Positions 3,363-62,172 of a stretch of DNA of 64,000 nucleotides are shown here, piece after piece. A program made the position numbers and the translations under genes. The stretch spans positions 62,001 through 126,000 of IMG/VR virus record IMGVR_UViG_3300013005_000001, one strand, 5' to 3'. Each line of letters starts with the position of its first letter. Positions within the stretch are counted from its first letter, which is position 1. The notes beneath the pieces are model-generated. The model worked only from the letters and a program-made list of their open reading frames with translations, had not been told where the DNA came from and did not search any database.

Positions 3363-3438
<76 letters not shown>

Positions 3439-10579: not shown

Positions 10580-10604
10580 AATACTTTCCGTATAATATGT
10601 GTAG

Positions 10605-10676
10605 CGCCTCCACTAGGAATCGAACCTAGAACGGGGGATTAGAAGTCCCATGTTATATCCATTTAACTACAGAGGC
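10605..10676 (-). tRNA. tRNA-Arg(TCT)
   Basis: GCCTCTG acceptor, CT-TCT-AA loop, GGTTCGATTCC T arm. Confidence 0.9.
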
Positions 10677-27533: not shown

Positions 27534-27690
27534 AGGTTTTCCTCTTCGGTATAATACCAATTTTTTGTAGGAGCATAAACAATTTTAGAAGCAATATAAA
27601 AAATAAATATTGCAAGCAATTGAATAAATAAAGATTGAGTTAATCCTATATAGATTAACCAAATGTAGGTAAACATAAGATTTAGCATAG

Positions 27691-27764
27691 TGGGCCCTCT
27701 GGGGCTCGAACCCAGGACACACGGATTATGAGTCCGATGCTCTAACCGACTGAGCTAAGGGCCC
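27691..27764 (-). tRNA. tRNA-Ile2/Met(CAT)
   Basis: GGGCCCT acceptor, CT-CAT-AA loop, canonical arms. Confidence 0.9.
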
Positions 27765-28054
27765 GTAGAACAGTTGTGACCATCTGGTCTGGGGGGCAGA
27801 TGAATTGGTATATTCACTTTGTGGACGGGCCAGTCGTAAACGAGTGGGACTCCGTAACAATGGGGACTGTTAACTCCCAAAATCAATATGATTGCATGTC
27901 ACTGCATAACATTAATCAGATAAAACAGGAACTAATAAACTAAAAGTAGAAAAAGATATTTTATAGTTATTAATATATTTATCTACAGATTTTTGTTCTT
28001 CTAATTCCCGTTCCAATTGATCAAGATCATGTTGTTCGATTGAACCTGAGCACA

Positions 28055-28255
28055 TTACAGTTTACCTGCTCCAGGAATATACATTTTAATCTGAGCTGAT
28101 TCAAACATAACTGAAGGTTGATCTTCTTTTTCGTATTCATAACCGATTTCGAAGCGTTCGTTTATTTCTTCTTGAAGTAATTGAACTGCATCTGCGTCGT
28201 CTTGGAATTCGCCAGGAATATCGGCGTGAATTTCAACGTTAATTTTAACTTTCAT
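28055..28255 (-). CDS. hypothetical acidic protein
   Basis: ORF track. Confidence 0.55.
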   Translation of the reverse strand: MKVKINVEIHADIPGEFQDDADAVQLLQEEINERFEIGYEYEKEDQPSVMFESAQIKMYIPGAGKL

Positions 28256-28408
28256 GAGTAGGTGTAGCCTCTTCTGTGAGTAGTAGGTATAAACGAATGT
28301 CTAATAACAAGTCTGTCATTTCAGATGACGAGACAAGCTGTTGGCCAGAAATGTCTCCAATGGCTTTGTCGACCATTTGGATTGCATTAGTTTTTGGATT
28401 AATAGTCA

Positions 28409-28687
28409 TTACGCTTTCCCTCCACGTTTTTTGTATATAGTAACTGCTTTTTCTAAGGTGGTGCAGTAATCACCATTTGATGCTTCAAAACCTTGAGGTC
28501 TTGCTGTTACGCTCCATACTACGTATGGATGAAGTTCATTTTCTCCAGAACAGATAGTTATCCAATAGGCATAACTATCTCCAGGAATTCTGTTTGCCAT
28601 TTTAGTAGAAGCAATGACCATACGGTTAGTGGTGCCAACTAAGTCACCAATACGTAGTTCATTGTCTAGGTTTAATTCATTTGTCAT
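28409..28687 (-). CDS. phage hypothetical protein
   Basis: Start reassigned downstream of tRNA-Lys; HPYVVW...GDYC pattern. Confidence 0.6.
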   Translation of the reverse strand: MTNELNLDNELRIGDLVGTTNRMVIASTKMANRIPGDSYAYWITICSGENELHPYVVWSVTARPQGFEASNGDYCTTLEKAVTIYKKRGGKA

Positions 28688-28689
28688 AG

Positions 28690-28762
28690 TACGCCCTCCG
28701 GGGCTCGAACCCGGGACACACGGATTAAAAGTCCGATGCTCTACCAACTGAGCTAAAGGCGC
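28690..28762 (-). tRNA. tRNA-Lys(TTT)
   Basis: Canonical cloverleaf, CT-TTT-AA loop. Confidence 0.92.
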
Positions 28763-29115
28763 GTATTGCTATCTATTAGCTTGCCACCATCGATCTTCTA
28801 GATCTTGGTCGGGTAAATTTGATTTTTGAGAATGCTTGCGAGCAGACTCAACCATTTCCTTAATTTCTTTATCTTCTTCACGAATAGCAATAAAAGTAAA
28901 GATGCCCCATAAAGTGCCCAGTGCAATGATTACATAAGTTAACATTAGAAGTATCTTTTCTTTATAAATTCAAAAATATAGACAACAAAAAAAGCAATCA
29001 ATATATTATAAATAATCATTTTAAATCCTTCTGAGTTAAAGATCAGTATTTTCTAAAATCCAGATAGCAGAACCAATAATAGAATAAAATATCACTAAAG
29101 TTATTAATACTTTAA

Positions 29116-29334
29116 TCATTGAGGATAGATATCGTCAATAGTAGTAGGTTCAATTATTTCTACTTGTTGTAGAATTTTCTTGAACTTCTTACGTTTTTTA
29201 ATCTTGTATCCGTTAATTTCAAGTTCTGAAACTATTTGTTCCGGTATACCATACCAAACAGTAATGCCATTACGAGTTAATACATGAGCTATAATGTCCA
29301 GTTTATTTTTAACGTGCATTTTAACGTATGTCAT
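29116..29334 (-). CDS. hypothetical basic protein
   Basis: ORF track. Confidence 0.5.
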   Translation of the reverse strand: MTYVKMHVKNKLDIIAHVLTRNGITVWYGIPEQIVSELEINGYKIKKRKKFKKILQQVEIIEPTTIDDIYPQ

Positions 29335-29343
29335 TGATCGGAC

Positions 29344-29544
29344 CTATACTGTGCGAACGTTGATTGCTTCAGGACCTTTACGTCCTTCGCCAATATCGAA
29401 TTGAACATTCTGGCCTGTAGTCAATGCAGGTTGAGCAGCTTGTTCAACATTTGAAGTATGAACAAAGATGTCTCCATCTGTGTCTGTAGAAATAAAGCCA
29501 AAGCCTTTTTCTTCATTGAAAAATTTTACAATACCTGTAGGCAT
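29344..29544 (-). CDS. cspA: cold-shock protein
   Basis: GIVKFFNEEKGFGFI (RNP1), DIFVHTS (RNP2), GRKGPEA. Confidence 0.95.
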   Translation of the reverse strand: MPTGIVKFFNEEKGFGFISTDTDGDIFVHTSNVEQAAQPALTTGQNVQFDIGEGRKGPEAINVRTV

Positions 29545-29600
29545 TAGTACTCATTTCTATTATATTATTTGTTTTATTGATTCCATAATAAATTATGGTT

Positions 29601-29888
29601 TCATATTCCATCTTTGTTGATAGTTCTTCTAGGCTTTCTTTTAGCATTACCATAAGGTAAATAGCCAAGAGATACACGTTGTTCTTCTGTTTCGCCACCC
29701 CATATGCCATATTCAAGATTGTTGCGAGCATAAGCTCTACATTGAGTGACTACTGGACATTGGGCGCAAATAGTTAAAGCTTTTGCTTCTCGTTTTACTC
29801 TAGCTTGAGGGCGTTCGTTATAAAGCGGAAAGAATAAATCAGTTTGATTTTTACATGCCGCTGCATCGAACCATGAAGGGTGATACAT
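29601..29888 (-). CDS. whiB: WhiB-family Fe-S transcriptional regulator
   Basis: AAC...LFFP...ICAQCPV...C...GIWGG. Confidence 0.93.
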   Translation of the reverse strand: MYHPSWFDAAACKNQTDLFFPLYNERPQARVKREAKALTICAQCPVVTQCRAYARNNLEYGIWGGETEEQRVSLGYLPYGNAKRKPRRTINKDGI

Positions 29889-29931
29889 TTAAATCCTTAA
29901 AAGATACTAATTTGATATAAAGGTTACTTAA

Positions 29932-30222
29932 TTAAAGTGGCCAATGTTTTGAATCTGCCTTAGGATCTAAAGCAGGAATTATATTACATGATATATTAAA
30001 TTTTTCTTGAGTTGATTCAACCCAAGCTTTTGCCTGCTCCAATGTAGGAAAGGGTCCCCATGATACCACATGGGTATAGCCATGATACTGAGCAAAGTAA
30101 CTATACTTGGGAATATCTTCTGTTGTTAAAACAGAATTGTACCAATCAATTTTAGACATATTAACATCTATATCTTCTAACATAGATATAGTTTTAAGGG
30201 TATTCTTAATTTTTTTAAACAT
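29932..30222 (-). CDS. hypothetical protein
   Basis: ORF track. Confidence 0.55.
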   Translation of the reverse strand: MFKKIKNTLKTISMLEDIDVNMSKIDWYNSVLTTEDIPKYSYFAQYHGYTHVVSWGPFPTLEQAKAWVESTQEKFNISCNIIPALDPKADSKHWPL

Positions 30223-30225
30223 GTC

Positions 30226-30534
30226 TTAGTCCTGACCGAAGTTAACGTGAACGACATTAGTGGTGTCAGTAGATTTAGGATTGTACATAAGTACTTTGGC
30301 TAAAGCCTGAGAATAATTTTTAAATGCTGGGTGATTAATTTTCTCTTCAGGAATTTCATCTCCGTATTCTGCGCGATGGATATAAAGAACACGTCCATCT
30401 TCAAAGTGGAAATCTAAACGATATCCAGAATCAGCAGTAAAAGCTTCTAAAGCATGTTCAATATTTAAATGATCAGCAGTTAAGCCGTCATTTGAACGAG
30501 TTGAGTAAGTAATAAACATTATAGGTACTTCCAT
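30226..30534 (-). CDS. hypothetical protein
   Basis: ORF track. Confidence 0.6.
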   Translation of the reverse strand: MEVPIMFITYSTRSNDGLTADHLNIEHALEAFTADSGYRLDFHFEDGRVLYIHRAEYGDEIPEEKINHPAFKNYSQALAKVLMYNPKSTDTTNVVHVNFGQD

Positions 30535-30731
30535 TTATCAATTCCAGGGATAAGGCCTAATGTAGAACCAGTATCCCAATTTACAAAAACTGTACCATTA
30601 TCATCTACATAGTTGATAACACCCTGAATACCAGGGGTTAAAGCTGTAAATTCATCTGTACAGAGAATCAATTCGATTCTTTTTCCGATAAGAGTTTTGC
30701 CATAATTGGCATACAGTGGATTTTTTTTCAT
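30519..30731 (-). CDS. DUF4314-like small beta protein
   Basis: G.RIELI..TD....PG..G.I.YVDD.G..FV.WD.GS.LGLI. Confidence 0.7.
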   Translation of the reverse strand: MKKNPLYANYGKTLIGKRIELILCTDEFTALTPGIQGVINYVDDNGTVFVNWDTGSTLGLIPGIDKWKYL

Positions 30732-30733
30732 AG

Positions 30734-30806
30734 CTCCCAGAGTAGGGCTCGAACCTACGACCAACGGATTAACAGTCCGTAGCTCTGCCAACTGAGCTAT
30801 CTGGGA
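30734..30806 (-). tRNA. tRNA-Asn(GTT)
   Basis: TCCCAGA acceptor, CT-GTT-AA loop. Confidence 0.93.
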
Positions 30807-30813
30807 TAAATTT

Positions 30814-31074
30814 TTAAATTATTACTTCAGTTGAAGGATCATAATTTTGCAACTGAGGATTATCAAGAAGTTGAATAGCAAATAACGGAGTAACGTCGTG
30901 ACTATCAAAATCTGTTTCAGTGTTGGCAAATGACAAAGTCAAATTAGATTCATGAAGAGATAATAAAAGCTCTCTAAGGTCAAGACCTATAGGTCTAAGA
31001 TTATCAATTAAGCGATGAGCTAAAAGAATAAGATCTTGTGCTTCTTGACGGGTTGGTTGTAATTTGGTTTTCAT
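30814..31074 (-). CDS. hypothetical protein
   Basis: ORF track with RBS. Confidence 0.55.
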   Translation of the reverse strand: MKTKLQPTRQEAQDLILLAHRLIDNLRPIGLDLRELLLSLHESNLTLSFANTETDFDSHDVTPLFAIQLLDNPQLQNYDPSTEVII

Positions 31075-31095
31075 ATTTTTCCTTTATTGTAGTTG

Positions 31096-31320
31096 CTACC
31101 ATGTAAACATGAATAACAAAGTAGTAAAAATTAAAACAATAAGAGCTAATATTTCATTTCTATATTGCATATACTTACGGGCATATTTTATACCGTTACG
31201 ATATATAGGGCTTAATTTGTTATCACCAAAATAAGTAAAAAAATGTTTATCTTCTATTGTTTTGTAGTGTTTGACTCCATAATCAAAACCACAAAAAAAA
31301 GTCTTAATGTTTTGCCACAT
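31096..31320 (-). CDS. small protein with C-terminal TM helix
   Basis: ILALIVLIFTTLLFMF. Confidence 0.55.
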   Translation of the reverse strand: MWQNIKTFFCGFDYGVKHYKTIEDKHFFTYFGDNKLSPIYRNGIKYARKYMQYRNEILALIVLIFTTLLFMFTW

Positions 31321-31368
31321 GTTTATTTCCTTGTAAGTATTGTTGCATTGTTTAATATAAACATACAG

Positions 31369-31452
31369 TACCCGAGACCGGACTTGAACCGGTAAGAGGT
31401 TGCCCTCCGGGGGGTTTAAGCCCCCTGCGTCTGCCTATTCCGCCACTCGGGC
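31369..31452 (-). tRNA. tRNA-Leu(TAA)
   Basis: GCCCGAG acceptor, GGCAGACG D arm, long variable arm, CT-TAA-AC loop. Confidence 0.93.
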
Positions 31453-36478: not shown

Positions 36479-39019
36479 CTAGAACTCAGCTTTGAGTCTA
36501 CGTGCAGGAGCAAGTGCTTCATTGTTAGTAAACACAATAGGTGAAAAGGTTGCATGATGCTTCTGGTATTCGAGCACATCGTTAAAGACGTGTTCTGTAC
36601 CATCAGGATCAGTGTAGACCCACTTATTGTGTCTAAAAGTTTTGATCTTATACTCATTGTCTTCGTATTGCATGATTACACGCTTACCAATACCGTAGTG
36701 AATGAGAGCTTTCTCAAGATACGGATATACAGTGCGGTTCATAACAATTTGGTCAGACAACTTACCTGAACTAGTAGGCTCTTTAATGCTTGAGCAATAC
36801 AAAGCAAGTACAAAGTCATGTTGATCCTCGACGCGTTCAAATGAATTGATTGCATCGACAACAAACTTGTACAAGTAATCCCATTCTTCACGCTTTATAG
36901 AACCAACAGTTTGAACGAATTCGTTGCTGTTAGTATTATAAATGTTCATACGGAACTTACGTAGTATGGGGCCAGCGTGAAAGTACAAGCGTTCAGCAAG
37001 AGCTTGAATAGTCGGAGACAATTCAATATTTTCTTGTGAATACTTGGTTACACGCTCTACATACAATGCATTGTAGTGCTTGCAGAGATTATTCAAATGA
37101 GTAAGTGTACCTTCGTAGGTTTCTACTTCAGGATGCTTACGAGCAAGATTCTTAAAGCGACCAAACCATAGATCATGATCTATTGGACGGCCGGAATTAA
37201 GAACCTCTTGAATAATAGTTTCTGCTTCAGCATCGATAGCTTGACGATCACGAGGATCTGAAGTCTGAGTACATCCGTCAATAGCAGATTCTAAAGAACA
37301 TACTTGAACTGGACGATGTTTTCCTAAAGTGGAAGAGTGAAGCATTGATCCGTTTACAAAACGACCAACGTTACCACCCATCATCGCAGTATCAATGTCT
37401 GCCATAACATCTGCTACAGAATAATTTTGCTCAGTCTTACGGACAGGCAAAGGGTTGTGATCACTTGGCAAACCAAGATACTTAACCTGATCGTTACGAA
37501 TTGCATAAGACAATCGAACTGGCCAGTTACGACCATTTACTTCAGGAAAGCTAATCACTTCGCCATTAGCTTTAGACCAAGTAGGATACCACTCGTCTTC
37601 AACATAGCTAAGAATGGTGTATTCACCATAGCCATTAGGAGAACGAGCGATAATAACTACTTTTTGACCGTCTTGAGTACCACCGGTAAGTGTACGATAG
37701 AATAACTTAAAGAAGTCGTCTTGATCATGACCGCCATGGCTCTCGTACATCTCAAGCCAGTCAAAGTCATTGACAACGTGAACACCGATATCATTGAGTC
37801 GACGAATTGTACCTTCTTCAACTTCAATATCCCATCCGCCCATACGTGCTAACGATTCAGGAATAACCTGCTCGTAAACACTGCACGGGATAGGGATACG
37901 GTTTTCAAGTGGCTTTGCGTGTGAGATAGCAAGAGTCTTAAACAACCACGGAGAATCCGTAATTGATAGTCCCATACTAGCCCAACGATAACCAACGTAT
38001 CCGATGCGAGCTTGAGCTTCTACATCTTCGACTTCTTTATTGTCACGTGAGAACTGACGAACAAAGTATGACTTCCAGTTGGTGAGAAGACGTCCATTGA
38101 CTGCGTCTTGGAACATCTTTTCATAGTCTTCTTTAAGCCACATTTCCATGTCAGCTTTGCGGAACAACTTTGGAAAGTTGATTACTGTTTGATCGTCAGT
38201 AACTACACGGGATTTAGGTCCTTGAGGTTCTGCGATAAGACGGAATCCACTAGAATAAGCAAGTTCTTTCTTAACGTTTTCACGAGTTGAAAGAATGTCA
38301 ACTCCTTCTGGAAGATTATCGGAAACAATGAAGTTGCCTTTAATCATGCCGTCTTCAAATAGAAGTCGACCATTGAATACGCGAGATTCAATTAGAAATC
38401 TGCGAAGGTCTGCTTGAATCTTTGGATCATAGTATACATCGTTTTGATCTTCTGAGTTGTTAGAGTCATAGATAGGCATTGCTTCTACAGCCTTACGAAT
38501 AAGACGTGAAGAAACAATGAAGCCACCATCGAGAAGTCGAGGTGTAGCTTGTTCTACCCATTCTGCCCAACCAGATTCAAAATTGAAACGTGTATAGTCA
38601 GTAGGATTAACCCATTGAATATTGACATCATCAAAATGAGCATTGATAAGTGCAGCACGGTGTACGGTTTTAAGACGCTTAGAGGTCTTGCCACCACCTT
38701 TGACTTTATATCCAGACTTAGTAAGTGCTGAAAGCCATCCGTTAGATCCCTTAAGGGATACAGCAACAATCTTGTTCTTGTCAACCAAAGCGTATTCGAC
38801 TGAAGGATGAGAAATAATCTTTTCAACTTCTGCACGGTCAAATACATTGGTGGGAATAGGCATTGTTGCTACACGAAACTCGGAAGCATCAACATTTTCC
38901 ATAAGCTCACGCATGATGCCTATGTCATAGAATCCAATTTGGTAGTCGTTAGTAGAACGCAATGGAGCATCCTTAAATGCTTTCATGCGTACTGTTGGTC
39001 GGTATGTATTAAAGTTCAT
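36479..39019 (-). CDS. putative single-subunit two-barrel RNA polymerase (RdRP/YonO-like), paralog 1
   Basis: SKRL, DGGFIVS, NGRLLFEDGMIKG, NVKKE, DDQT, GGHDQDD, ARSPN; AGGAGG RBS. Confidence 0.6.
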   Translation of the reverse strand: MNFNTYRPTVRMKAFKDAPLRSTNDYQIGFYDIGIMRELMENVDASEFRVATMPIPTNVFDRAEVEKIISHPSVEYALVDKNKIVAVSLKGSNGWLSALTKSGYKVKGGGKTSKRLKTVHRAALINAHFDDVNIQWVNPTDYTRFNFESGWAEWVEQATPRLLDGGFIVSSRLIRKAVEAMPIYDSNNSEDQNDVYYDPKIQADLRRFLIESRVFNGRLLFEDGMIKGNFIVSDNLPEGVDILSTRENVKKELAYSSGFRLIAEPQGPKSRVVTDDQTVINFPKLFRKADMEMWLKEDYEKMFQDAVNGRLLTNWKSYFVRQFSRDNKEVEDVEAQARIGYVGYRWASMGLSITDSPWLFKTLAISHAKPLENRIPIPCSVYEQVIPESLARMGGWDIEVEEGTIRRLNDIGVHVVNDFDWLEMYESHGGHDQDDFFKLFYRTLTGGTQDGQKVVIIARSPNGYGEYTILSYVEDEWYPTWSKANGEVISFPEVNGRNWPVRLSYAIRNDQVKYLGLPSDHNPLPVRKTEQNYSVADVMADIDTAMMGGNVGRFVNGSMLHSSTLGKHRPVQVCSLESAIDGCTQTSDPRDRQAIDAEAETIIQEVLNSGRPIDHDLWFGRFKNLARKHPEVETYEGTLTHLNNLCKHYNALYVERVTKYSQENIELSPTIQALAERLYFHAGPILRKFRMNIYNTNSNEFVQTVGSIKREEWDYLYKFVVDAINSFERVEDQHDFVLALYCSSIKEPTSSGKLSDQIVMNRTVYPYLEKALIHYGIGKRVIMQYEDNEYKIKTFRHNKWVYTDPDGTEHVFNDVLEYQKHHATFSPIVFTNNEALAPARRLKAEF

Positions 39020-39213
39020 AATCCCTCCTTAGGATTAGTCATTGGTCCCTTCTTTTTGTATAAACTATTCCCTTATTAAAAAATAATTTACACAATTAGA
39101 ATATTTGATACTTGTATGTGTGAGTGCCAGCTGTTATATTTTCGAAGCCAGGCTGGCGCTGGTTCTTTTCAGGTATATAACTAAACCTGTTCTTAGTTAG
39201 CTTTGGAGCATTG

Positions 39214-39411
39214 CTAAGAAACTTTACGAGGGACAGAGTAACCCAACTTAGGGCCAGGAGCCTTAGTTAATGTTGCCTTGCCACTGATAAGTATGTTGTA
39301 ATCATTTAAAGCGTCACAAATTCGCAAGCAAATATTGTGAAGCTCATGGTGGTTGATTTGGTTTGTTTGCAGACTTTCGTAGATGTCTGAATACATTTGT
39401 GTATAATTCAC
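39214..39411 (-). CDS. hypothetical protein
   Basis: GGAG RBS. Confidence 0.5.
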   Translation of the reverse strand: MNYTQMYSDIYESLQTNQINHHELHNICLRICDALNDYNILISGKATLTKAPGPKLGYSVPRKVS

Positions 39412-39499
39412 AAATATCTCCTTTTATAGACATGAACTACTCATCTACAGCATAAAGTTAATAAGCTGTTGAAGAATGTTCAAGTATTTTAACTTGTCA

Positions 39500-40081
39500 T
39501 TATTTTGCAGGTACCAGAAGGCCGTTAGTAAAGTTTTCAAACTTAGGACGACCCTTAGTAGAGATTCGCCATAAGTTGAAAGCCCAACGGTCTGGATCTA
39601 CATCTTCTGTCCAATGCAAATTCTTGCAATTGAACTCGAAGACTTCTCCACCAGTCATTTCAATCTTAGTGATTTCAGGTGGATTAATTTGATGTTCTTC
39701 AGGTACCCATTTATACATTGGGTACGCTTTAGAATAGCACCATGTAACTCTACCAAGATTAATTCCGATAGAACGGAAGTCAGCATAAGCTGCATCTCGG
39801 TGAGGACTAATGCTGCCACCTTTGGAAACCAGACCTAACTCTGGTTCCCATTCAAATGTTGAACAAATGTTTTTAACAAATGTCCAGATCTTATCATCTT
39901 GACAAGCAAGTTGATAGTCTCTGGCTTCACTTAGTGGAGCTTCGTATGGAAACCATACTCGACTTCGACCAGGTGCATAGTTAGAAACGTCAGTGCCAAG
40001 TTGAGGTACAATATTCTCTTCGAGGTATTGAACTGCTTTAGCAACACGTTCTGGACTTATTGTTGTAATAATATTAAGCAT
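39500..40081 (-). CDS. 2OG-Fe(II) dioxygenase (AlkB-like)
   Basis: ISPHRD (HxD), INLG, NLHW (distal His), RWAFNLWR. Confidence 0.75.
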   Translation of the reverse strand: MLNIITTISPERVAKAVQYLEENIVPQLGTDVSNYAPGRSRVWFPYEAPLSEARDYQLACQDDKIWTFVKNICSTFEWEPELGLVSKGGSISPHRDAAYADFRSIGINLGRVTWCYSKAYPMYKWVPEEHQINPPEITKIEMTGGEVFEFNCKNLHWTEDVDPDRWAFNLWRISTKGRPKFENFTNGLLVPAK

Positions 40082-40089
40082 TGTGTTCC

Positions 40090-40530
40090 TTATGGCTTGA
40101 ATGGGTCGTTAAAAATTGAATTTAAATCAAATTTTGGTTTTGAAGTTTTGCGAGGAGTAACAGGTAAAGCTGATACTGCAAAAAACAAATTAACTTGTGA
40201 GCGTCGAACTGTAACCATTCTTCCATCAGAAAGTTGAACTTTAGATTTTGTAACAGGTTCAGGAATATCACCGCTTGCAAGAGTATTTAACTCTCCATTG
40301 ACACTATAGACAAGAGCCCATCCAGTAGCACCAGGAGGAATTCTTGTTCCATACTTAGATGCACGAATTCCGTAGAAGTCAAATGATTCAGTGTTGTTCT
40401 TTTTTCTGCGATAGCCTAGAAGAGCACGAGCAAACAATGAGTCTGCGTAGCCTTCTTCGTCTTTAGTAGCATGCAAAACAAAATAGCAGTCAGCAAAGTC
40501 TGTAGGGATTGTTAATTCATTAGTATTCAT
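40090..40530 (-). CDS. hypothetical protein
   Basis: ORF track. Confidence 0.6.
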   Translation of the reverse strand: MNTNELTIPTDFADCYFVLHATKDEEGYADSLFARALLGYRRKKNNTESFDFYGIRASKYGTRIPPGATGWALVYSVNGELNTLASGDIPEPVTKSKVQLSDGRMVTVRRSQVNLFFAVSALPVTPRKTSKPKFDLNSIFNDPFKP

Positions 40531-40539
40531 TTTAATTTT

Positions 40540-41286
40540 TTATTCTTTAAATGGGTTGTTAGGGATTGGGACTTCTTGCTTTTCACCATCAATATAAATA
40601 AAAGATGGACGATCAGGAACAACATTGTAATGTGCCTGGTAAGCAACAGCGTGGTAATGGCTCAAAAAGATCTTGACAGCAAACCTACGTGCTTGAGCAT
40701 CTATCTGTTCTTGGGGAAGTTTTCCCAGAGATAGAGTATCAAGGTTCAGTTTATTTTTTGAACTTGCATTGTCAAGAAGTTCATAAGCTTTATCAGCATA
40801 CATTAAACTGTTGTTATTGTCAGTTCGTCTTGCGCGATCTTGCAAATATAGGTGTCCATAAAAACACTTGGAACGATTAGCATACTTTGAAAAATTTAAA
40901 CCAATTTTCCAACAAATGTTTTTAAGTTCACCATTGTATGCTGCTTTGCCACTGTCTTGTGCAGATGGATCAAAACCAGCATAACGCCAGAGAGCACCAG
41001 CTGTGTTGGCTTTGGTGATATCAATATGGGACATAATGCCCGCAGTAAGTACTGGGCCAAGACCATATTGGTTAATACACCATTCGCCAACAACTGAAGC
41101 TGTTGAATAGTTAGTAAGTGGACGCTTAATGAGAGCGTCTACCGAATCAAGCGAGTCAAGCATAAGCTCGACAAGTTCGATGTCATCTTCGTCTTTAAGA
41201 AGATGTTCGATAGATGCTTTAGCCTCTTGAATTTTGTAATAAGAAGCTACAATTTTGCGGACAGAATTGTTATCTAAATTGGACAT
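40540..41286 (-). CDS. stand-alone IS110 C-terminal/Nop-like RNA-binding protein (TasA-like), no RuvC domain
   Basis: YYKIQ coiled coil, GLGPVLTAGIMS.ID, ALWRYAG.DP, YN.ELK, ARRFAVKIFL. Confidence 0.65.
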   Translation of the reverse strand: MSNLDNNSVRKIVASYYKIQEAKASIEHLLKDEDDIELVELMLDSLDSVDALIKRPLTNYSTASVVGEWCINQYGLGPVLTAGIMSHIDITKANTAGALWRYAGFDPSAQDSGKAAYNGELKNICWKIGLNFSKYANRSKCFYGHLYLQDRARRTDNNNSLMYADKAYELLDNASSKNKLNLDTLSLGKLPQEQIDAQARRFAVKIFLSHYHAVAYQAHYNVVPDRPSFIYIDGEKQEVPIPNNPFKE

Positions 41287-41312
41287 GATACTATTCCTTT
41301 ATGTAATATAAA

Positions 41313-41756
41313 TTATGAAGCTTTTTTATAAGCCTTGTACTTGGTAGTTGCCTTACGGCTAATCCAAATGGGTGCAGTAATAACTTTACCGGTACCGTAT
41401 GCAACTTTAGCCAAATCACCGGCAAGTTCTTTGCCTTTATCTGATTTGTCTTTTACCACGGTTTTAATATGAACAGTACGAGGAGTCCCAAGAGTCTGAG
41501 CTTTAGGACTATCGTAGTTCCAATGCAAGAATGCATAACCGGGAATTGACAATACGGTCGATATCATAGCTGCACCAAGGGCAATTAAGCCTTGAGCACC
41601 AAATGCAAGACCCAAGATAAATGAGATTAGCACGGATACAACCATGTTAAACCATTTGTACTTGTGAGCATTGACTCGCCAACCAGCAAAGTTGGCAGCA
41701 AACATCATTTCGACAATAGTCGAAGAGATTGCTAGCATTATCATCATCATAAACAT
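41313..41756 (-). CDS. membrane protein (about 3 TM helices)
   Basis: Hydrophobic N-terminal segments. Confidence 0.65.
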   Translation of the reverse strand: MFMMMIMLAISSTIVEMMFAANFAGWRVNAHKYKWFNMVVSVLISFILGLAFGAQGLIALGAAMISTVLSIPGYAFLHWNYDSPKAQTLGTPRTVHIKTVVKDKSDKGKELAGDLAKVAYGTGKVITAPIWISRKATTKYKAYKKAS

Positions 41757-41801
41757 TGTATATTCTCCTATGTAATTATATAGTCTTTAGTTTTGTAGAT
41801 A

Positions 41802-41942
41802 CTATAGTTTTTTTTTCTTGTCAATTTTCTCCTGTTCACGCTTAGATCTGTATTCAGGATCTCCTTTTAGAAAGAAGACTAATAAGACTATGAAGCATAT
41901 TGGAAAGAATATAATAGTTATAAGATCTATGTATACTGGCAT
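41802..41942 (-). CDS. small membrane protein
   Basis: MPVYIDLITIIFFP... TM helix plus basic tail. Confidence 0.45.
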   Translation of the reverse strand: MPVYIDLITIIFFPICFIVLLVFFLKGDPEYRSKREQEKIDKKKKL

Positions 41943-42063
41943 AAAATTACCTTCTGTGTAGTGTTCCCTTCTTTTTTGTACGAACAAAAAAAGTGGATAC
42001 ATAGCAAAGGGGCCGGACTCTTGCGAGCCCGACCCCTAAATGCCGTGTCTTTTGTTGCTTATC

Positions 42064-42426
42064 CTAGCGGCTAAGTTCTACCCAAAGATTCCAAGCGTTG
42101 GCTTTGGTTTGATCTTGTACGATACAACGACTTAGTCTAAGGCCGTCTTGATTGGCTTTAGCGTACATGGTAGCTGCAAAGTTGTTTGCTTCTTTTTGAG
42201 TAGCAAACGGGATATTGATATGGAATGATTGGTTCATGTTTTCCAGAAGATGTGCGTACATCTGTGTGGTAATAGCATTACGCTTACGTCCACGGCCAGC
42301 TCCTATTGGAAAGCTAGCTACTGGTGTCATGAGTGAGGTTACATCAGTTATACCAAATCGCTCTGGGCGTTTGATCAACTGAGTAGCAGTGGACATGTCT
42401 GACAGGTTACGAATCCGTGTGGTCAT
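42064..42426 (-). CDS. hypothetical protein
   Basis: AAGGAG RBS, followed by a hairpin terminator. Confidence 0.65.
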   Translation of the reverse strand: MTTRIRNLSDMSTATQLIKRPERFGITDVTSLMTPVASFPIGAGRGRKRNAITTQMYAHLLENMNQSFHINIPFATQKEANNFAATMYAKANQDGLRLSRCIVQDQTKANAWNLWVELSR

Positions 42427-42487
42427 CGTATTCTCCTTATATTAATAATGAAAGTTTGGTATATTTCTGTACATACAGCTGTACATA

Positions 42488-43363
42488 CTATTGTCTAGCT
42501 TTTATATTCCAATTGGATAATCTTCCACTTGAAAAGTGTAAGATCCAGCTGGCAAACAAAGCGTTGACTTTTGGATTCATTAAATCTTCAGGACTATATC
42601 CAAATTGTTCTCTTAATGTTTTAAACCATGAAGAGTTAATTTGTAATAGACCTGAATCATATGATCCATTGCTGTTAAGTGTCCAAACTAATTTGCCATT
42701 TTCCCATTTAGCATTGACGGCTCCAGGATTACACCTAGATTCACGCCAAGCAATATAGGAAAAGACTTTAGGTGGCATAGCATACTGTTTAAAAGTAGGT
42801 TCATATTGAGGACAATAGAACTGATCACCTATAGGTAACTTAGCTTTTAGTACAGTGTCTTTTTTAGCTTTTAGATAGGCGTTGTTTTTAATACAACCCC
42901 ATCCATTGAATCCTACTGCTGGACGATAGAAAGGCTTATTAGCCAATTTATCTTCTAGAGTTAGGAATTCTTTTGTTTGGTAACCGAGTACAGCTATTCT
43001 GTTAGCTACAACAATTTGTTCTAGCACAGTCGCTTTGGAAGGGTGAGAAGCAAATTCTTTGCCTCCGTAACCCTCCCAGGTAGATCTGGCTATGCCAAGT
43101 CCACCTCCCCAGTTACCACCATCTTGCCAGTTTTGGGCAGTTTCACATTGTGCCACTTTAGTCCAATACTTTATGGAAGGTCCCATCTTAAATGTGACGT
43201 ATTTCCATTTGGTTGGAACACTAGGCAGGTTTGTACTTCGGGGTTCGGAAGATGACTCCGAAACACCTCCGACATCCTGGGCAGATGCTGATGTTGTTGT
43301 TGCTGGTAATACTCCAGCTATTGCCACTATAAGTGACAATAATATATTTCGTATGTTGCGCAT
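42488..43363 (-). CDS. secreted Rpf-like transglycosylase fused to a second lysozyme-like (SLT) domain
   Basis: Signal peptide; W.KVAQCET..NW...GGGL.I..STW..YGG...EQI.VA; IAWRES...N...DSGLLQIN. Confidence 0.85.
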   Translation of the reverse strand: MRNIRNILLSLIVAIAGVLPATTTSASAQDVGGVSESSSEPRSTNLPSVPTKWKYVTFKMGPSIKYWTKVAQCETAQNWQDGGNWGGGLGIARSTWEGYGGKEFASHPSKATVLEQIVVANRIAVLGYQTKEFLTLEDKLANKPFYRPAVGFNGWGCIKNNAYLKAKKDTVLKAKLPIGDQFYCPQYEPTFKQYAMPPKVFSYIAWRESRCNPGAVNAKWENGKLVWTLNSNGSYDSGLLQINSSWFKTLREQFGYSPEDLMNPKVNALFASWILHFSSGRLSNWNIKARQ

Positions 43364-43548
43364 GGTATCGCTCCTTTCGTGTGGGTCTGAGACTTACGTC
43401 TCATTAGCAAACGCGCAGGTTGCGAAACCGAAGATGCACGGACACAACGAATTGTCCGTAGCAGTGGCAGGATTGCCTCTCCGACTTCGTAGATATAACT
43501 ATCTATTTGGGTTGGGGATGTTACCCCTGCCCGTTGCAAGCGGGCATC
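43364..43548 (-). ncRNA. highly structured 5' leader (candidate cis-regulatory RNA) of the Rpf gene
   Basis: Six hairpins including TACGGACA/TGTCCGTG and TGAGAC-GTAA-GTCTCA. Confidence 0.45.
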
Positions 43549-43841
43549 ATATATTGTATCACATAGTTGATAGTGTTGGTAGTTTTTAAACTAAACAGTT
43601 TGTTCCTCCAGTGTTTTACCATACAGGATATTATTTAATATAATATTTTCCTGTTTTAATTTCATTTGAAATTATGGTATAAACGGAAAAAGGAATACAT
43701 TACTTAAAAGTAGATATCCCGAGAAACTGTTGGGACAATTTCCCGGGATATTACAAAGACATTGTATTCCTGCGCTTCGCAATAATTTAATTGCGTTCTA
43801 TAAATAGTAACGGTTTTTAAAGTATTACTAAGCTTTGGTGT

Positions 43842-54812: not shown

Positions 54813-54850
54813 TTCTGTCTCCTTTTTGTTGTTGTTGTTTTTCATGTTAA

Positions 54851-56707
54851 TTACGCCCACCCTGCAATTTCTACGCTGAGTTTATCTTTCAAGAACTTAA
54901 TGATTGGCTTGCGTGTTTCCTCGGCAAGAGGCTGATTGTGCTTACCAAGAAGCTGAGTCATTGTGCCTTGAACCTCACCATTAAGTATTTGTAATGGCGT
55001 AGAACTCCTTCTTACTTCTGCGTGCCCAATCCAATTGCCTTCAACATCTTTGAAACCAATGATGATTGTCTGACCGTCGTAAACACGATCTGCGTAAGAG
55101 CCAATGCAATTGTTTTGAGTAGCTCCCCATTCAACAAGGTCATGCGTCATCTTAGGAACAATCATTTGAATCCCTTCTGCAATCCACTTTCCATCAAATT
55201 CTGCAAATGCTCTTAGGTAAGGAGTGTTTCGCAGCTTCTTGTTTTCTGTCTTGATCTTGTTGTACTCTGCAGTAACAAAGTCATGGATTTGTTCAACATT
55301 CATCCTTGATCGTGCTACGTGCTGCTTAATTGCAGTTCTGTGGTTACGGCCCTTGATTTGTGTAAACATGTGTGCTGCATCAACAGCGTGCTGCCCATTT
55401 AAATACAAATGACCAGGATCTTTGTCAGATGTAAACATTTGCAAGAGATATTCATCCTTATAACCAAAGTCCCGAAAGAATGCCTTAAAACGTTTTCTCA
55501 TTAAAGGACTTGAGTTATAGCGCATGTAGTGACACACTACGTCAAGATCTAACTTCTCTAGCACTTGAGGATTGAACCCACGGGCAATGATCAACAGGTT
55601 AATAGCTCCACGAAGATGATGGAGCGTATTGATCTTGTTTATGTCACCAAAGATCTTCTTAGTTACTCCGTGCGGATGCATGAAAGCCTTATTCAAGATT
55701 TTCTTAGTTGATGTCTCTCCACCAATCCAATAGATGTCAGATTGAGTAATTCCATTTGGGTACAGCCCTGCACACGTACCACCATACTCAGTTGGCATGT
55801 ACTTGAGGATTTTCAATACATCCTCTTCCTTAATCAACTGATCACGCAAACCAAGCACTGTCAGTTCGATTGTGTCATCCAGTGGAACCAATTTCTTTCT
55901 TGCCATCTGGCCGTAAATAAGACCCCAGATCGGTGTGCCTGTCTTTTTGTTCTTCCACATGAGACGGTACCCATTGTTGGTTTTGTTCATGAATAGAACT
56001 CCAGGCCACTTCTTTTGGTAGTGCTGACCCCTGGTGTTAATAGTTGCTGTTTTGAATTCAACAATCCAACCAGCTTTTTCACCAGGCATTTCCGAAACGT
56101 ACATCTCATTGATAGAGACGTAATCAAACAACTTGTGTTCCTCATATTCATCTCCATATGTTTGTTCAAATTTCAAGGCTCGTTTGGTGCGTTCCCCTTT
56201 GTTAACAACTCGAGTTGAGTATGCGCACAATGGAGAGAAGTTGTCTTCGCCGGAACCCAACAGTCCCAACTTTTCTACCTTCTCATTGAACTTTTTAATG
56301 GCATTTCTTGCATCCAAGTAGTTGTCATTAATAAGAGCCAATGACTCTATTACTTCAATCTTGGATTGGAACTCTTGCATTGAACTACCAGCTCGTGGGA
56401 AGGAACGATCATTGCCCACCATGGTCATAACACTTAAATGATGATCAATCTCAGCTCTACTCATTACTTGTTGGATCTGAGTGATATCAAGTATGGCTTT
56501 TGCCAAGTCCATTGAATTCATTTCTGCTGGATCCATGTTTGCAAACCAGATGTTATATTGCTCTAGCGTGCCTTTCTTTGTTTGAATTGTGAGCTTCATG
56601 GGCTCTACCTCTTTCTGTATAGGGAATGGGTTTTTCTCCTGCGGAAGCAGGATTGGTGGTTGTGGATAGTGGGTGGATGGGACATCAGTTTGCTCGAAAC
56701 TGCTCAT
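54851..56707 (-). CDS. PcfJ-like domain protein
   Basis: C-terminal VPK...DLVEWG..QNNCIGSY...V..G...I...Q..G.HN; alternative start at 56599. Confidence 0.8.
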   Translation of the reverse strand: MSSFEQTDVPSTHYPQPPILLPQEKNPFPIQKEVEPMKLTIQTKKGTLEQYNIWFANMDPAEMNSMDLAKAILDITQIQQVMSRAEIDHHLSVMTMVGNDRSFPRAGSSMQEFQSKIEVIESLALINDNYLDARNAIKKFNEKVEKLGLLGSGEDNFSPLCAYSTRVVNKGERTKRALKFEQTYGDEYEEHKLFDYVSINEMYVSEMPGEKAGWIVEFKTATINTRGQHYQKKWPGVLFMNKTNNGYRLMWKNKKTGTPIWGLIYGQMARKKLVPLDDTIELTVLGLRDQLIKEEDVLKILKYMPTEYGGTCAGLYPNGITQSDIYWIGGETSTKKILNKAFMHPHGVTKKIFGDINKINTLHHLRGAINLLIIARGFNPQVLEKLDLDVVCHYMRYNSSPLMRKRFKAFFRDFGYKDEYLLQMFTSDKDPGHLYLNGQHAVDAAHMFTQIKGRNHRTAIKQHVARSRMNVEQIHDFVTAEYNKIKTENKKLRNTPYLRAFAEFDGKWIAEGIQMIVPKMTHDLVEWGATQNNCIGSYADRVYDGQTIIIGFKDVEGNWIGHAEVRRSSTPLQILNGEVQGTMTQLLGKHNQPLAEETRKPIIKFLKDKLSVEIAGWA

Positions 56708-60994: not shown

Positions 60995-61141
60995 CACATC
61001 TCCTTTCAGTTTTGCCCACACGGTTATGCAGGACTTGGTGGTCGTCAGACTACCCATAAAAGAAAAACACCATACTGGATGTATAGTGTTTCTCTATTAG
61101 TGATTGTTCTGTTGCCAGGCGTCACTACTGCCCCGTACTAA

Positions 61142-61318
61142 TTACAGATCCTGCCTGGTATTCAAATACTCTTTAAGCTGTTTAAGCTTCAAGTGCATTT
61201 CTTCCTTGCATTCATCTATATTTAGGTGATGGTTCTCATCGTGCATATACATGACTGACTGTTGCCATTCACATGTTGCACCATAAGCATCACTTAACAA
61301 GTCTGCTAGATTGTTCAT
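61142..61318 (-). CDS. 58 aa protein, tandem copy 1
   Basis: AGGAGG RBS; MNNLADLLSDAYGATCEWQ... Confidence 0.7.
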   Translation of the reverse strand: MNNLADLLSDAYGATCEWQQSVMYMHDENHHLNIDECKEEMHLKLKQLKEYLNTRQDL

Positions 61319-61450
61319 CTTGCTTCCTCCTTTCTGAATAGATGGCCTACCAAGCCTAGAATCTACCCATAAAAGAAAAACTACACTGGATGTGTAGTTC
61401 TTCTTCGTGATTGTTCTGTTGCCAGGCGTCACTACTGCCCCGTAGTCTAA

Positions 61451-61627
61451 TTACAGATCCTGCATGTTATCCAAATACTCTTTCAGGTTTTTAAGCCTCA
61501 AGCGCATTTCTTTATCACACTGGTCTATATTTAGGCGATGGTTCTCATCATGCATCCACATAACTGAATGTTGCCATTCACATGTTGCATTAAGAGCATC
61601 GCTTAACAAGGATGCTAGATTTTTCAT
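61451..61627 (-). CDS. 58 aa protein, tandem copy 2 (absent from the ORF track)
   Basis: MKNLASLLSDALNATCEWQHSVMWMHDENHRLNIDQCDKEMRLRLKNLKEYLDNMQDL. Confidence 0.7.
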   Translation of the reverse strand: MKNLASLLSDALNATCEWQHSVMWMHDENHRLNIDQCDKEMRLRLKNLKEYLDNMQDL

Positions 61628-61752
61628 CTTGCTTCCTCCTTTCTAGATAGATGGCCTACCAAGCCTAGAATCTATCCACAAAAAGAAAACCCCTTTCGGA
61701 GTCTTCTTAATCACCAATTATAATAATATTTATAGGATGGTGAATCCTTGGT

Positions 61753-62172
61753 CTAACCCTTCGTGAAGCCCTCGCTTGCGTTGAAGACATTGATTTCCAT
61801 CTTCGTGATGTGTTCTTCGTTATACATAACGACGATGTCATCACGCTGGATTTCTTTCTTCAGCCAAGCTTGCAGACATTCAGTCACAACATGATGACTG
61901 ATTTCTTTTGTTGGGCTCAGAAGACAAAACGGGTTGGTCTTTTCCCATTCGGAGTCATACTTGCTGACTACGGTAAACATCCAATTGAAGCCCTTTTCAA
62001 GGCCAATCAGCTCGACATCAACCCAGTTGGCAATGGGAACTACCTTTCCGTTGATGTATCGGCCCGGAGACACAATTTCATCAAGAGTCAGGTCGTAGCT
62101 TGCCCACAGAAGCAGTGCTCCAATAGGAAGATTCATGAGAGCTTCGACAAGCTCCCAATCCTTCTCGTCCAT
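61753..62172 (-). CDS. hypothetical protein
   Basis: AAGGA RBS in cassette. Confidence 0.6.
   Translation of the reverse strand: MDEKDWELVEALMNLPIGALLLWASYDLTLDEIVSPGRYINGKVVPIANWVDVELIGLEKGFNWMFTVVSKYDSEWEKTNPFCLLSPTKEISHHVVTECLQAWLKKEIQRDDIVVMYNEEHITKMEINVFNASEGFTKG

Follow-up and report, generated by a model that had tools for sequence, protein, structure and literature searches.

The 64,000-nucleotide stretch of DNA analysed here (the window) covers positions 62,001 to 126,000 (G000:C1:62001-126000) of the IMG/VR virus record IMGVR_UViG_3300013005_000001, a genome of 210,302 bp with direct terminal repeats (DTR). The GC content of the window is ~37%, and the sequencing runs that contain the sequence are DNA metagenomes of lake water from 2018 to 2024. 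The gene in question is a tas gene (Table 1), present in one copy in the genome and separated from the neighbouring open reading frames (ORFs) by gaps of 9 and 26 nt. Judged by its sequence and predicted fold, its 248-amino-acid product is a nuclease-less member of the Nop-domain family of Tas (TIGR-associated) proteins, TasA in terms of domains. TIGR-Tas systems have been known since 2025 (Faure et al. 2025, PMC12045711). We class the protein as a Tas-family protein and not as a TIGR-Tas system, because two defining features of such systems, the array and the Tyr/His (Y/H) loop, are both missing.

A first-pass annotation, made from the letters alone, had described a coiled-coil N-terminus with IS110 C-terminal-type motifs and no DEDD RuvC domain, and had likened the protein to TasA and the shared Tas, IS110 and Nop fold. 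This description agrees with the later results. An AlphaFold2 model built on 35 homologues (predicted local distance difference test score 87.9, predicted template modelling score 0.86) consists of a two-helix hairpin (residues 6-32 and 37-62), a core made up of helices only and a short beta-hairpin at the C-terminus, and the first of these is the predicted equivalent of the coiled-coil dimerisation scaffold of Tas proteins. The sole Pfam match was to PF02371 (IS116/IS110/IS902 C-terminal domain, Transposase_20) at residues 75-121, and it was marginal and partial (22.3 bits with a cut-off of 21.3; 48 of 87 model positions). Pfam gave no match to the DEDD/RuvC domain (PF01548) at E<=0.1 and none to Nop (PF01798) or NOSIC, and neither an HNH nor a RuvC nuclease domain was found in the 248 residues by Pfam or in the model, which begins at the coiled coil; for the DEDD domain the protein would also be too short. 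The PHROG match was to phrog_4285, annotated as 'transposase' (6e-21).

Both in sequence and in fold the Tas proteins were closest. With the single sequence, phmmer against PDB found TasH of Salicola phage CGphi29 (1.5e-8) and TasR chain 9mty (2e-4). The profile of the 35 homologues, which have 38 invariant columns, matched the same TasR chain at 2.6e-17, in two stretches that jointly span profile positions 23-246 and thus almost the full length, and TasH at 4.8e-15. In the Foldseek comparison with PDB eleven TasH and TasR chains were on top (E 2e-6 to 1e-4, template modelling (TM) score ~0.6), followed by the IS110-family recombinases IS621 and ISCro4 (E ~1e-2, TM score about 0.5), lower matches being noise; no Nop5 or Nop56/58 chain was among the 50 best matches listed. 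The family is large, with 3,309 representative clusters at E<=1e-3 in an exhaustive profile search. A collection of GenBank phages gave the TasH of Salicola phage CGphi29 as sole match (28% identity) and no near match at the DNA level.

Dual-repeat TasA (e.g. FpTasA; PMC12045711), SpTasH (9w03/9w04/21kl) and TaTasR (9mty) have the same fold as the protein described here, with the order coiled-coil hairpin, Nop core and C-terminal beta-hairpin in their Nop regions and the same invariant core motifs. The C-terminal RNA-binding domain of the IS110 bridge-RNA recombinases (IS621, 8wt6/8wt9; ISCro4, 9t56) is also of this fold, but the likeness to them is clearly weaker in sequence and in structure. 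Unlike these recombinases, the protein has no DEDD/RuvC catalytic domain, and its gene is single-copy, syntenic and non-mobile, without a bridge-RNA-like non-coding end. The N-terminal fibrillarin-binding domain of Nop5 and Nop56/58 of the box C/D small nucleolar ribonucleoproteins is likewise missing, and their fold is not the closest one.

Synteny and the arrays of related phages

The tas gene belongs to a gene block that is conserved in a family of freshwater jumbo phages of ~180-210 kb. The block runs from a 336-amino-acid (aa) protein through a transglycosylase (291 aa), 120-aa and 66-aa proteins and a 147-aa membrane protein to tas, and continues after a variable stretch with an 846-aa protein, a 218-aa protein, a DEAD/ResIII helicase (557 aa) and a subtilase (508 aa). 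When the synteny was traced by tblastn, tas was found at the same position in relatives down to 41% identity. Because tas sits in this conserved block a mobile IS110 remnant is excluded, and the absence of insertion-sequence (IS) ends, remarked upon in the first-pass annotation, is in line with the single copy, the syntenic slot shared with the relatives and the lack of mobility. The 846-aa protein has no Pfam or PHROG match, but it occurs family-wide (52-97% identity) and serves as the anchor gene beside arrays, tas and a structured RNA of 67 nt that is discussed below. The loci L125 and L126 (related viral loci carry L numbers here, genomes G numbers) are syntenic to window positions 36479-43363, with transglycosylase, membrane protein, an 856-aa protein and helicase, and tas is absent from them. 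As the syntenic relative L125 has none, tas is an accessory gene, which across this phage family is found with an array, without an array, or not at all.

Four scanners were used to look for arrays. They were based on lag autocorrelation, on chains of boxC-N8-12-boxD intervals, on TIGRFinder-like stem-loop units and on periodic 7-mers, and their design followed Xu et al. (2026, 10.64898/2026.09.09.750476). In the positive control, consisting of 80 related viral loci, clear dual-repeat arrays were recovered beside most tas genes. The array-bearing relatives from jumbo phages (46-49% identity) are L010/11, L012/13, L014/15/18, L016, L017 and L122. Their arrays have 4 to about 19 units with a period of 37-38 nt and the dual repeats (G/A)AATGAATCA and (A)TTAGTAACA, and they always lie just after tas or in the slot between tas and the gene of the 846-aa protein, the latter being occupied in L011, L013, L014/15/18, L016, L017 and L122.

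In the 210-kb genome of the window no dual-repeat array was found in scans for autocorrelation at lags of 12-130, box chains, k-mers and the repeats of the family. The first-pass annotation had noted that no TIGR array is adjacent to the gene; with scanners validated on array-bearing relatives this now extends to the whole genome. It had also named periodic box-N9-box arrays as something to be looked for in the full genome, and the scans returned coding repeats only (collagen-like GXY, PPYF-type and TGN), which were rejected as array candidates. The repeat AATGAATCA occurred 7 times compared to 4.6 times expected, never in tandem; the same search found 14 tandem copies in the array-bearing G005. 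Half or solo units with the sister repeats (AATGAATCA, TTAGTAACA) were at or below the shuffle level in this genome and in G001 (205,907 bp) and G002 (202,043 bp), two further complete DTR genomes of the subclade that also gave no arrays. These three genomes were searched completely and the other twelve lineage groups over 8-10 kb of flank or the contig. With this scope, all 15 of the 15 lineage groups without histidine in the C-terminal loop (WIN/L004/L005, WIN being the window, L006/7, L008/9, L019-21, L107-L110, L119 and L127-L130) have no array, while arrays are present in all six His-bearing groups of the phage family that have enough flank.

Protein changes and constraint in the short TasA

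Like dual-repeat TasA, from which it probably descends, the protein is phage-encoded and has no nuclease domain, and its nearest relatives are bona fide TasA proteins with adjacent arrays (46-49% identity, as above). Unlike dual-repeat TasA, it has no array genome-wide, no Tyr/His dyad and no N-terminal extension, its wedge-type loop is shortened, the residue at the K233 position is Ala and its evolution is faster.

TasA proteins of the long type have 283-308 amino acids, an N-terminal extension of ~40 residues (FDFP..F.R..RDVRS), the loop WEKGQKRP and the C-terminal loop RPYIIAHGDHVH. The last resembles KPWILEHGGHVDY of TaTasR (9mty) and RPLYVQEKLGH of SpTasH, which contains Y289 and H296. 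These two residues of SpTasH are catalytic in the metal-independent maturation of pre-tigRNA, the precursor of the guide RNA (PMC13421893), and the Y/H dyad has been reported to be conserved in dual-repeat systems. Nearly all other Tas proteins have ..GH.H in the C-terminal loop. The short type, found in the closer relatives and in the window, has 222-255 amino acids and is without the N-terminal extension. Its wedge-type loop (residues ~108-116) is reduced to DSGKAA or NKK. compared to WEKGQKRP in the array-bearing relatives, and its C-terminal loops, RPSFIYIDGEKQ (IDGEKQ), INGEKQ, IDGIEQ and VNGKKQ, have zero histidine. In the window this loop reads RPSFIYIDGEKQEVPIPNNPFKE, in which the Tyr/His processing dyad is missing and there is no His. 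The equivalent of K233, a processing residue of SpTasH, is Lys in the long type but Ala, Val or Leu in the short type, and Ala in the window. The array-less clade has lost the His-rich loop with which dual-repeat Tas proteins mature pre-tigRNA. Four further His-less clusters (P0123, P0132, P0148 and P0153) have the same synteny and no arrays on their contigs; their proteins have 246-295 amino acids, so that not all of the His-less proteins are short.

The core motifs GxGP, D..K, WRY.G.DP, N...K...WK, FYG..Y..D..RR and AQARRF.VKIFLSH are invariant in both types. The residues kept in both are GxGP, D89, K92, W100-R-Y, G104, D106-P, N118, K122, W126-K, K134, F142-Y-G, Y147, D150, R153-R154, Q198, R200-R201, K205 and F207-L-S-H.

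In a quick maximum-likelihood tree of 62 Tas proteins the His-less, array-less proteins formed one branch, with a support of 98 in the Shimodaira-Hasegawa-like approximate likelihood ratio test and a stem length of 0.76. The branch lies within the jumbo-phage Tas clade (support 93), which in turn is surrounded by array-bearing dual-repeat Tas proteins. The simplest reading would be that an array-associated ancestor lost its array and loop once. The ratio of non-synonymous to synonymous substitution rates (dN/dS) was 0.086 between window and L004 (dS 0.36), 0.108 between window and L005 (dS 0.67) and 0.095 between L004 and L005, dS ranging over 0.36-0.71. The gene is thus not decaying but under strong purifying selection. 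Divergence relative to the 846-aa protein had a median of 1.59 for short TasA compared to 0.93 for long TasA, i.e. it was about 1.7 times faster, which indicates a constraint that has been shifted or relaxed in the short type but is still strong.

Possible roles of the array-less TasA

The gene had at first been proposed to code for an RNA-guided DNA-binding factor. In this form the proposal was not supported, since no guide of dual-repeat, stem-loop or solo-unit type was found in three complete genomes and the His-rich C-terminal loop is lost; a guide encoded elsewhere or of a new type is conceivable. Our tentative explanation, which we consider plausible if somewhat short of probable, is a nuclease-less Tas protein of a derived, array-less subclade that would still be an RNA-binding coiled-coil dimer and would use RNA made elsewhere, with trans-loading as the preferred form. 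The subclade has lost the array, the His-rich C-terminal loop, the ~40-residue N-terminal extension and the basic/aromatic WEKGQKRP loop, probably on one long branch, while the coiled-coil hairpin has been retained and the Nop core still has all of its invariant residues. The short TasA would form a coiled-coil dimer with predicted RNA binding through this core. It could presumably neither encode nor mature tigRNAs of its own, and any RNA used by it would have to be made elsewhere, in our preferred reading as tigRNAs of co-infecting array-bearing relatives. A role in phage-phage competition could follow, either as a decoy that soaks up the guides of rivals or poisons their TasA dimers, or as a free-rider.

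Trans-loading is favoured because the lost parts serve guide-making only, because tas is accessory and evolves fast, like competition genes, and because the sister phages have one common repeat family. As far as they were searched for in IMG/VR and in metagenome collections, the array-bearing relatives are from similar environmental data. The specific mechanism, trans-loading by a decoy or pirate, is nevertheless doubtful. Phages carry orphan cas-type components and anti-CRISPR decoys. The orphan components may be seen as analogous, being likewise one part of an RNA-guided system that is kept under selection without a guide array; the analogy is the motive for the trans-loading or decoy hypothesis and carries no weight as evidence.

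Several points weigh against this explanation. Three RNA-contacting elements are altered in the short type, namely the wedge-type loop, the C-terminal loop and the K233 position, and these changes argue equally for a new RNA partner, or for none, as for binding of the ancestral tigRNA. RNA binding itself is predicted from the conserved core, and that array-bearing and array-less relatives infect the same host together is an assumption. When spacer pairs of the sister arrays were compared to the array-less genomes, 82 hits were obtained compared to 50-86 in controls with shuffled spacers, which gives no signal of rivalry. As the loss is probably a single one in evolution, the correlation between array and histidine would count as one event and not as fifteen, and the tree behind it is a quick version, the careful search being unfinished. 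Expression in the lake is suggested by contigs of four lake metatranscriptomes with 100% identity to parts of tas, at a depth of 2-4 compared to 5-15 for the genes just upstream, but carry-over of DNA into these contigs is possible.

It is also conceivable, although unlikely, that the protein is a canonical RNA-guided TasA, acting as a DNA-binding repressor, with a phage-encoded guide that escaped detection. Such a guide could be in the form of single stem-loop-type tigRNAs with non-standard boxes, possibly within coding sequence, that are matured by host RNases. The stem-loop TIGR systems do use host RNases and are also without the Y/H loop, and the fully conserved Nop core and the purifying selection would be expected of a guided protein. 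Moreover, just 6,685 arrays are known for 20,096 tas loci, about two thirds of the tas loci being without an annotated array. However, a stem-loop scan of the genome (CNA-N9-YG twice with a stem of >=5 bp) gave 22 scattered hits on the two strands, with ~10 expected, which is about the level of chance, none of them clustered or near tas, as far as motif scans go, which depend on their motif definitions. The protein is also nested in the dual-repeat clade, outside the stem-loop clades, and the gaps on either side of tas are narrow.

Rather unlikely, too, is exaptation of the fold as a guide-independent coiled-coil dimer with a fixed RNA or DNA target, which would act on the early gene cluster as regulator or as architectural factor. 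That all guide-related accessories have gone while the fold has been retained would be well explained in this way, and the long stem branch and faster evolution are as expected after a change of function. A WhiB-type regulator gene stands beside tas in several relatives, and the Nop-domain proteins Prp31 and Nop56/58 are known to bind fixed RNAs (summarised in PMC12045711). A core regulator would, however, fit less well than an accessory or competition gene with the dispensability of tas in a syntenic relative, and the sole conserved structured RNA in the vicinity is also present beside array-bearing TasA and in blocks that have no tas.

This RNA is a double pseudoknot of 67 nt in the slot that holds the array in the sister phages. 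Its helix P1 is formed by CAGGU/ACCUG and P2 by the P1 loop GUUAUAU with AUAUAAC, whereas P3 consists of GAACCAG/CUGG(C)UUC and P4 of the P3 loop GCCAGC with GCUGGC. Over 12 distinct copies 99.3% of 297 cells were paired, compared to 24-35% in slid controls, and compensatory changes occurred in 11 of 25 pairs, with support for all four helices. Between the window and L109 the RNA is 100% identical over 64 nt, while the flanking 846-aa proteins are just 72% identical. Rfam 15 gave no match to it even at E<=10; across the window Rfam found tRNAs only, with nothing at 38900-39500. A covariance model (R1) found the RNA in most array-less relatives and also in L122, L123 and L120/L121/L125/L126, but not in G005, L010-L019 or L127-L130.

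That this RNA is the partner of TasA is very unlikely. Its location in the slot of the sister arrays, 30-55 nt past the tas stop in L004 and L107, its presence in most array-less lineages and its extreme conservation and structure would speak for a partner. It co-occurs, however, with long His-bearing TasA and an array in L122 and with long TasA in L123, it is found in the syntenic block without tas in L120/L121/L125/L126, it is missing from the array-less L019 and L127-L130, and it has no box C/D-type layout with twin spacers. As a replacement of the array or a specific TasA partner it was rejected on account of the array in L122 and the lack of tas in L125. Being present with array-less TasA, with array-bearing TasA and with no tas, the element is an independent phage RNA motif, apparently a new one, and might serve as a leader of the riboswitch type or as a ribozyme-like element. 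In L007 (10076-10174), and also in L107, the motif is followed by a tRNA-like domain that is deleted in the window. The domain in L007 has the acceptor GGAAGUG/CACUUCC and the T-arm GGUUCGACUCC; its match to transfer-messenger RNA (RF00023) was weak (24.8 bits with a gathering score of 47, E 2.4e-6), and ARAGORN made no call there. A conserved non-coding stretch lies beyond it in L007 and L107-L109.

Least probable is a functionless, decaying relic, left over from an IS110 element or a dead TIGR-Tas system, in spite of the missing array and processing residues and the marginal PF02371 match: the ORF is full-length in >=15 lineages, with identities that fall to about 41-55%, dN/dS is close to 0.1 while dS is unsaturated, the columns invariant across the homologues number 38, the model is confident and the gene is single-copy and syntenic without a DEDD domain, so that a decayed IS110 fragment not conserved in relatives, which the first-pass annotation had named as an outcome that would contradict it, was rejected on copy number, synteny and dN/dS.

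A new functional class derived from TIGR-Tas, whether an anti-TIGR decoy or guide pirate or an effector switched to a single new RNA that is not from an array, seems an improbable outcome at present. If true, with either option a natural Tas protein would for the first time have been shown to function in the absence of its cognate array. The discoverers of TIGR-Tas listed 'arrayless systems' as an unresolved question, and purifying selection together with correlated changes in just the RNA-handling elements argues that array-less Tas proteins are more than annotation failures. Nature itself provides a clean comparison in this phage family, whose syntenic sister genomes have TasA with array and His loop, TasA without either, or no tas. 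The His loop could be a sequence marker that predicts association with an array, and short and long TasA together with the sister tigRNAs, the repeats of which are known, provide constructs for the study of trans-acting or guide-free functions. Xu et al. (2026, 10.64898/2026.09.09.750476) described one array-less branch, of compact TasR, and left another source of guides open. That branch has RuvC and no coiled coil and is in the stem-loop part of the tree, whereas the protein described here is a TasA with a coiled coil from the dual-repeat clade, with array-bearing sister phages for direct comparison. We found no earlier account of a TasA clade that lacks both array and His and is nested among dual-repeat systems; the unreleased TIGRSafari catalogue may already hold these loci among roughly 13,000 array-less tas loci.

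Other features of the window

Table 1 Coordinates of tas, of the parts of its product and of further features, numbered from the first nucleotide of the window
Feature	Position	Strand	Remarks
tasA-like gene, 248 aa	40540..41286	-	ATG-to-stop ORF; nuclease-less Tas-family Nop-domain protein (by sequence and predicted fold), short His-less array-less subclade
N-terminal helical hairpin, residues 6-62	41101..41271	-	predicted helices H6-32 and H37-62; aligned to the coiled-coil part of TasH/TasR
Nop / IS110-C-terminal-type core, residues 65-220	40627..41094	-	from alignments of array-less and array-bearing relatives
C-terminal loop RPSFIYIDGEKQEVPIPNNP, residues 226-245	40552..40611	-	counterpart of the pre-tigRNA processing loop; no histidine
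Interval between tas and the 846-aa gene	39019..40539	-	ORFs of 146, 193 and 65 aa and the 67-nt structured RNA; no array or repeat units
146-aa ORF	40090-40530	-	directly downstream of tas
67-nt double-pseudoknot RNA	39125-39191	-	106 nt upstream of the 846-aa gene; found by aligning non-coding DNA
Gene of the 846-aa protein	36479-39019	-	anchor gene
Terminator-like hairpin	43714-43751	-	17 bp and T-run; in the 479-nt intergenic region upstream of the transglycosylase gene
Six tRNA genes	27690-31452, 3363-3438, 10604-10676		Gly-tcc, Arg-tct, Met-cat, Lys-ttt, Asn-gtt, Leu-taa
Tandem repeat	61050-61690		309-bp unit, 2.1 copies, 85% matches, Tandem Repeats Finder score 943

The stretch between tas and the gene of the 846-aa protein is a hot spot of variable small accessory ORFs. 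The 146-aa ORF in it has no Pfam or PHROG match, and its homologues occur next to array-less tas only (L009, 4.7e-40; L019, 9e-15). It was rejected as a constant partner of TasA, as there is no homologue in L004, L005 and L007.

A gene of the WhiB family (PF02467) adjoins tas in L107 (9719-9958), L108 (9752-9976), L109 (9752-9991) and L128 (3172-3396), with DUF732 matches nearby; the window has the 147-aa membrane protein in the place where these relatives have the WhiB gene. The WhiB and DUF732 genes are a hint that these lake phages may have Actinobacteria as hosts. The depth of the metatranscriptome contigs over 42007-43500 was 3-5 times that over tas.

Outside the window, coding tandem repeats of the same genome lie at G000:C1:59200-59400, 157340-157520, 54830-54945 and 169900-170100. 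They comprise the collagen-like GXY repeat, a repeat with a 12-nt period (CCNCCNTAYTTY-like on the strand shown) and repeats of 24 and 42 nt, and such repeats can mislead array finders. Four of the six tRNA genes of the window are found at 27-32 kb, in a stretch that is for the most part poor in ORFs.

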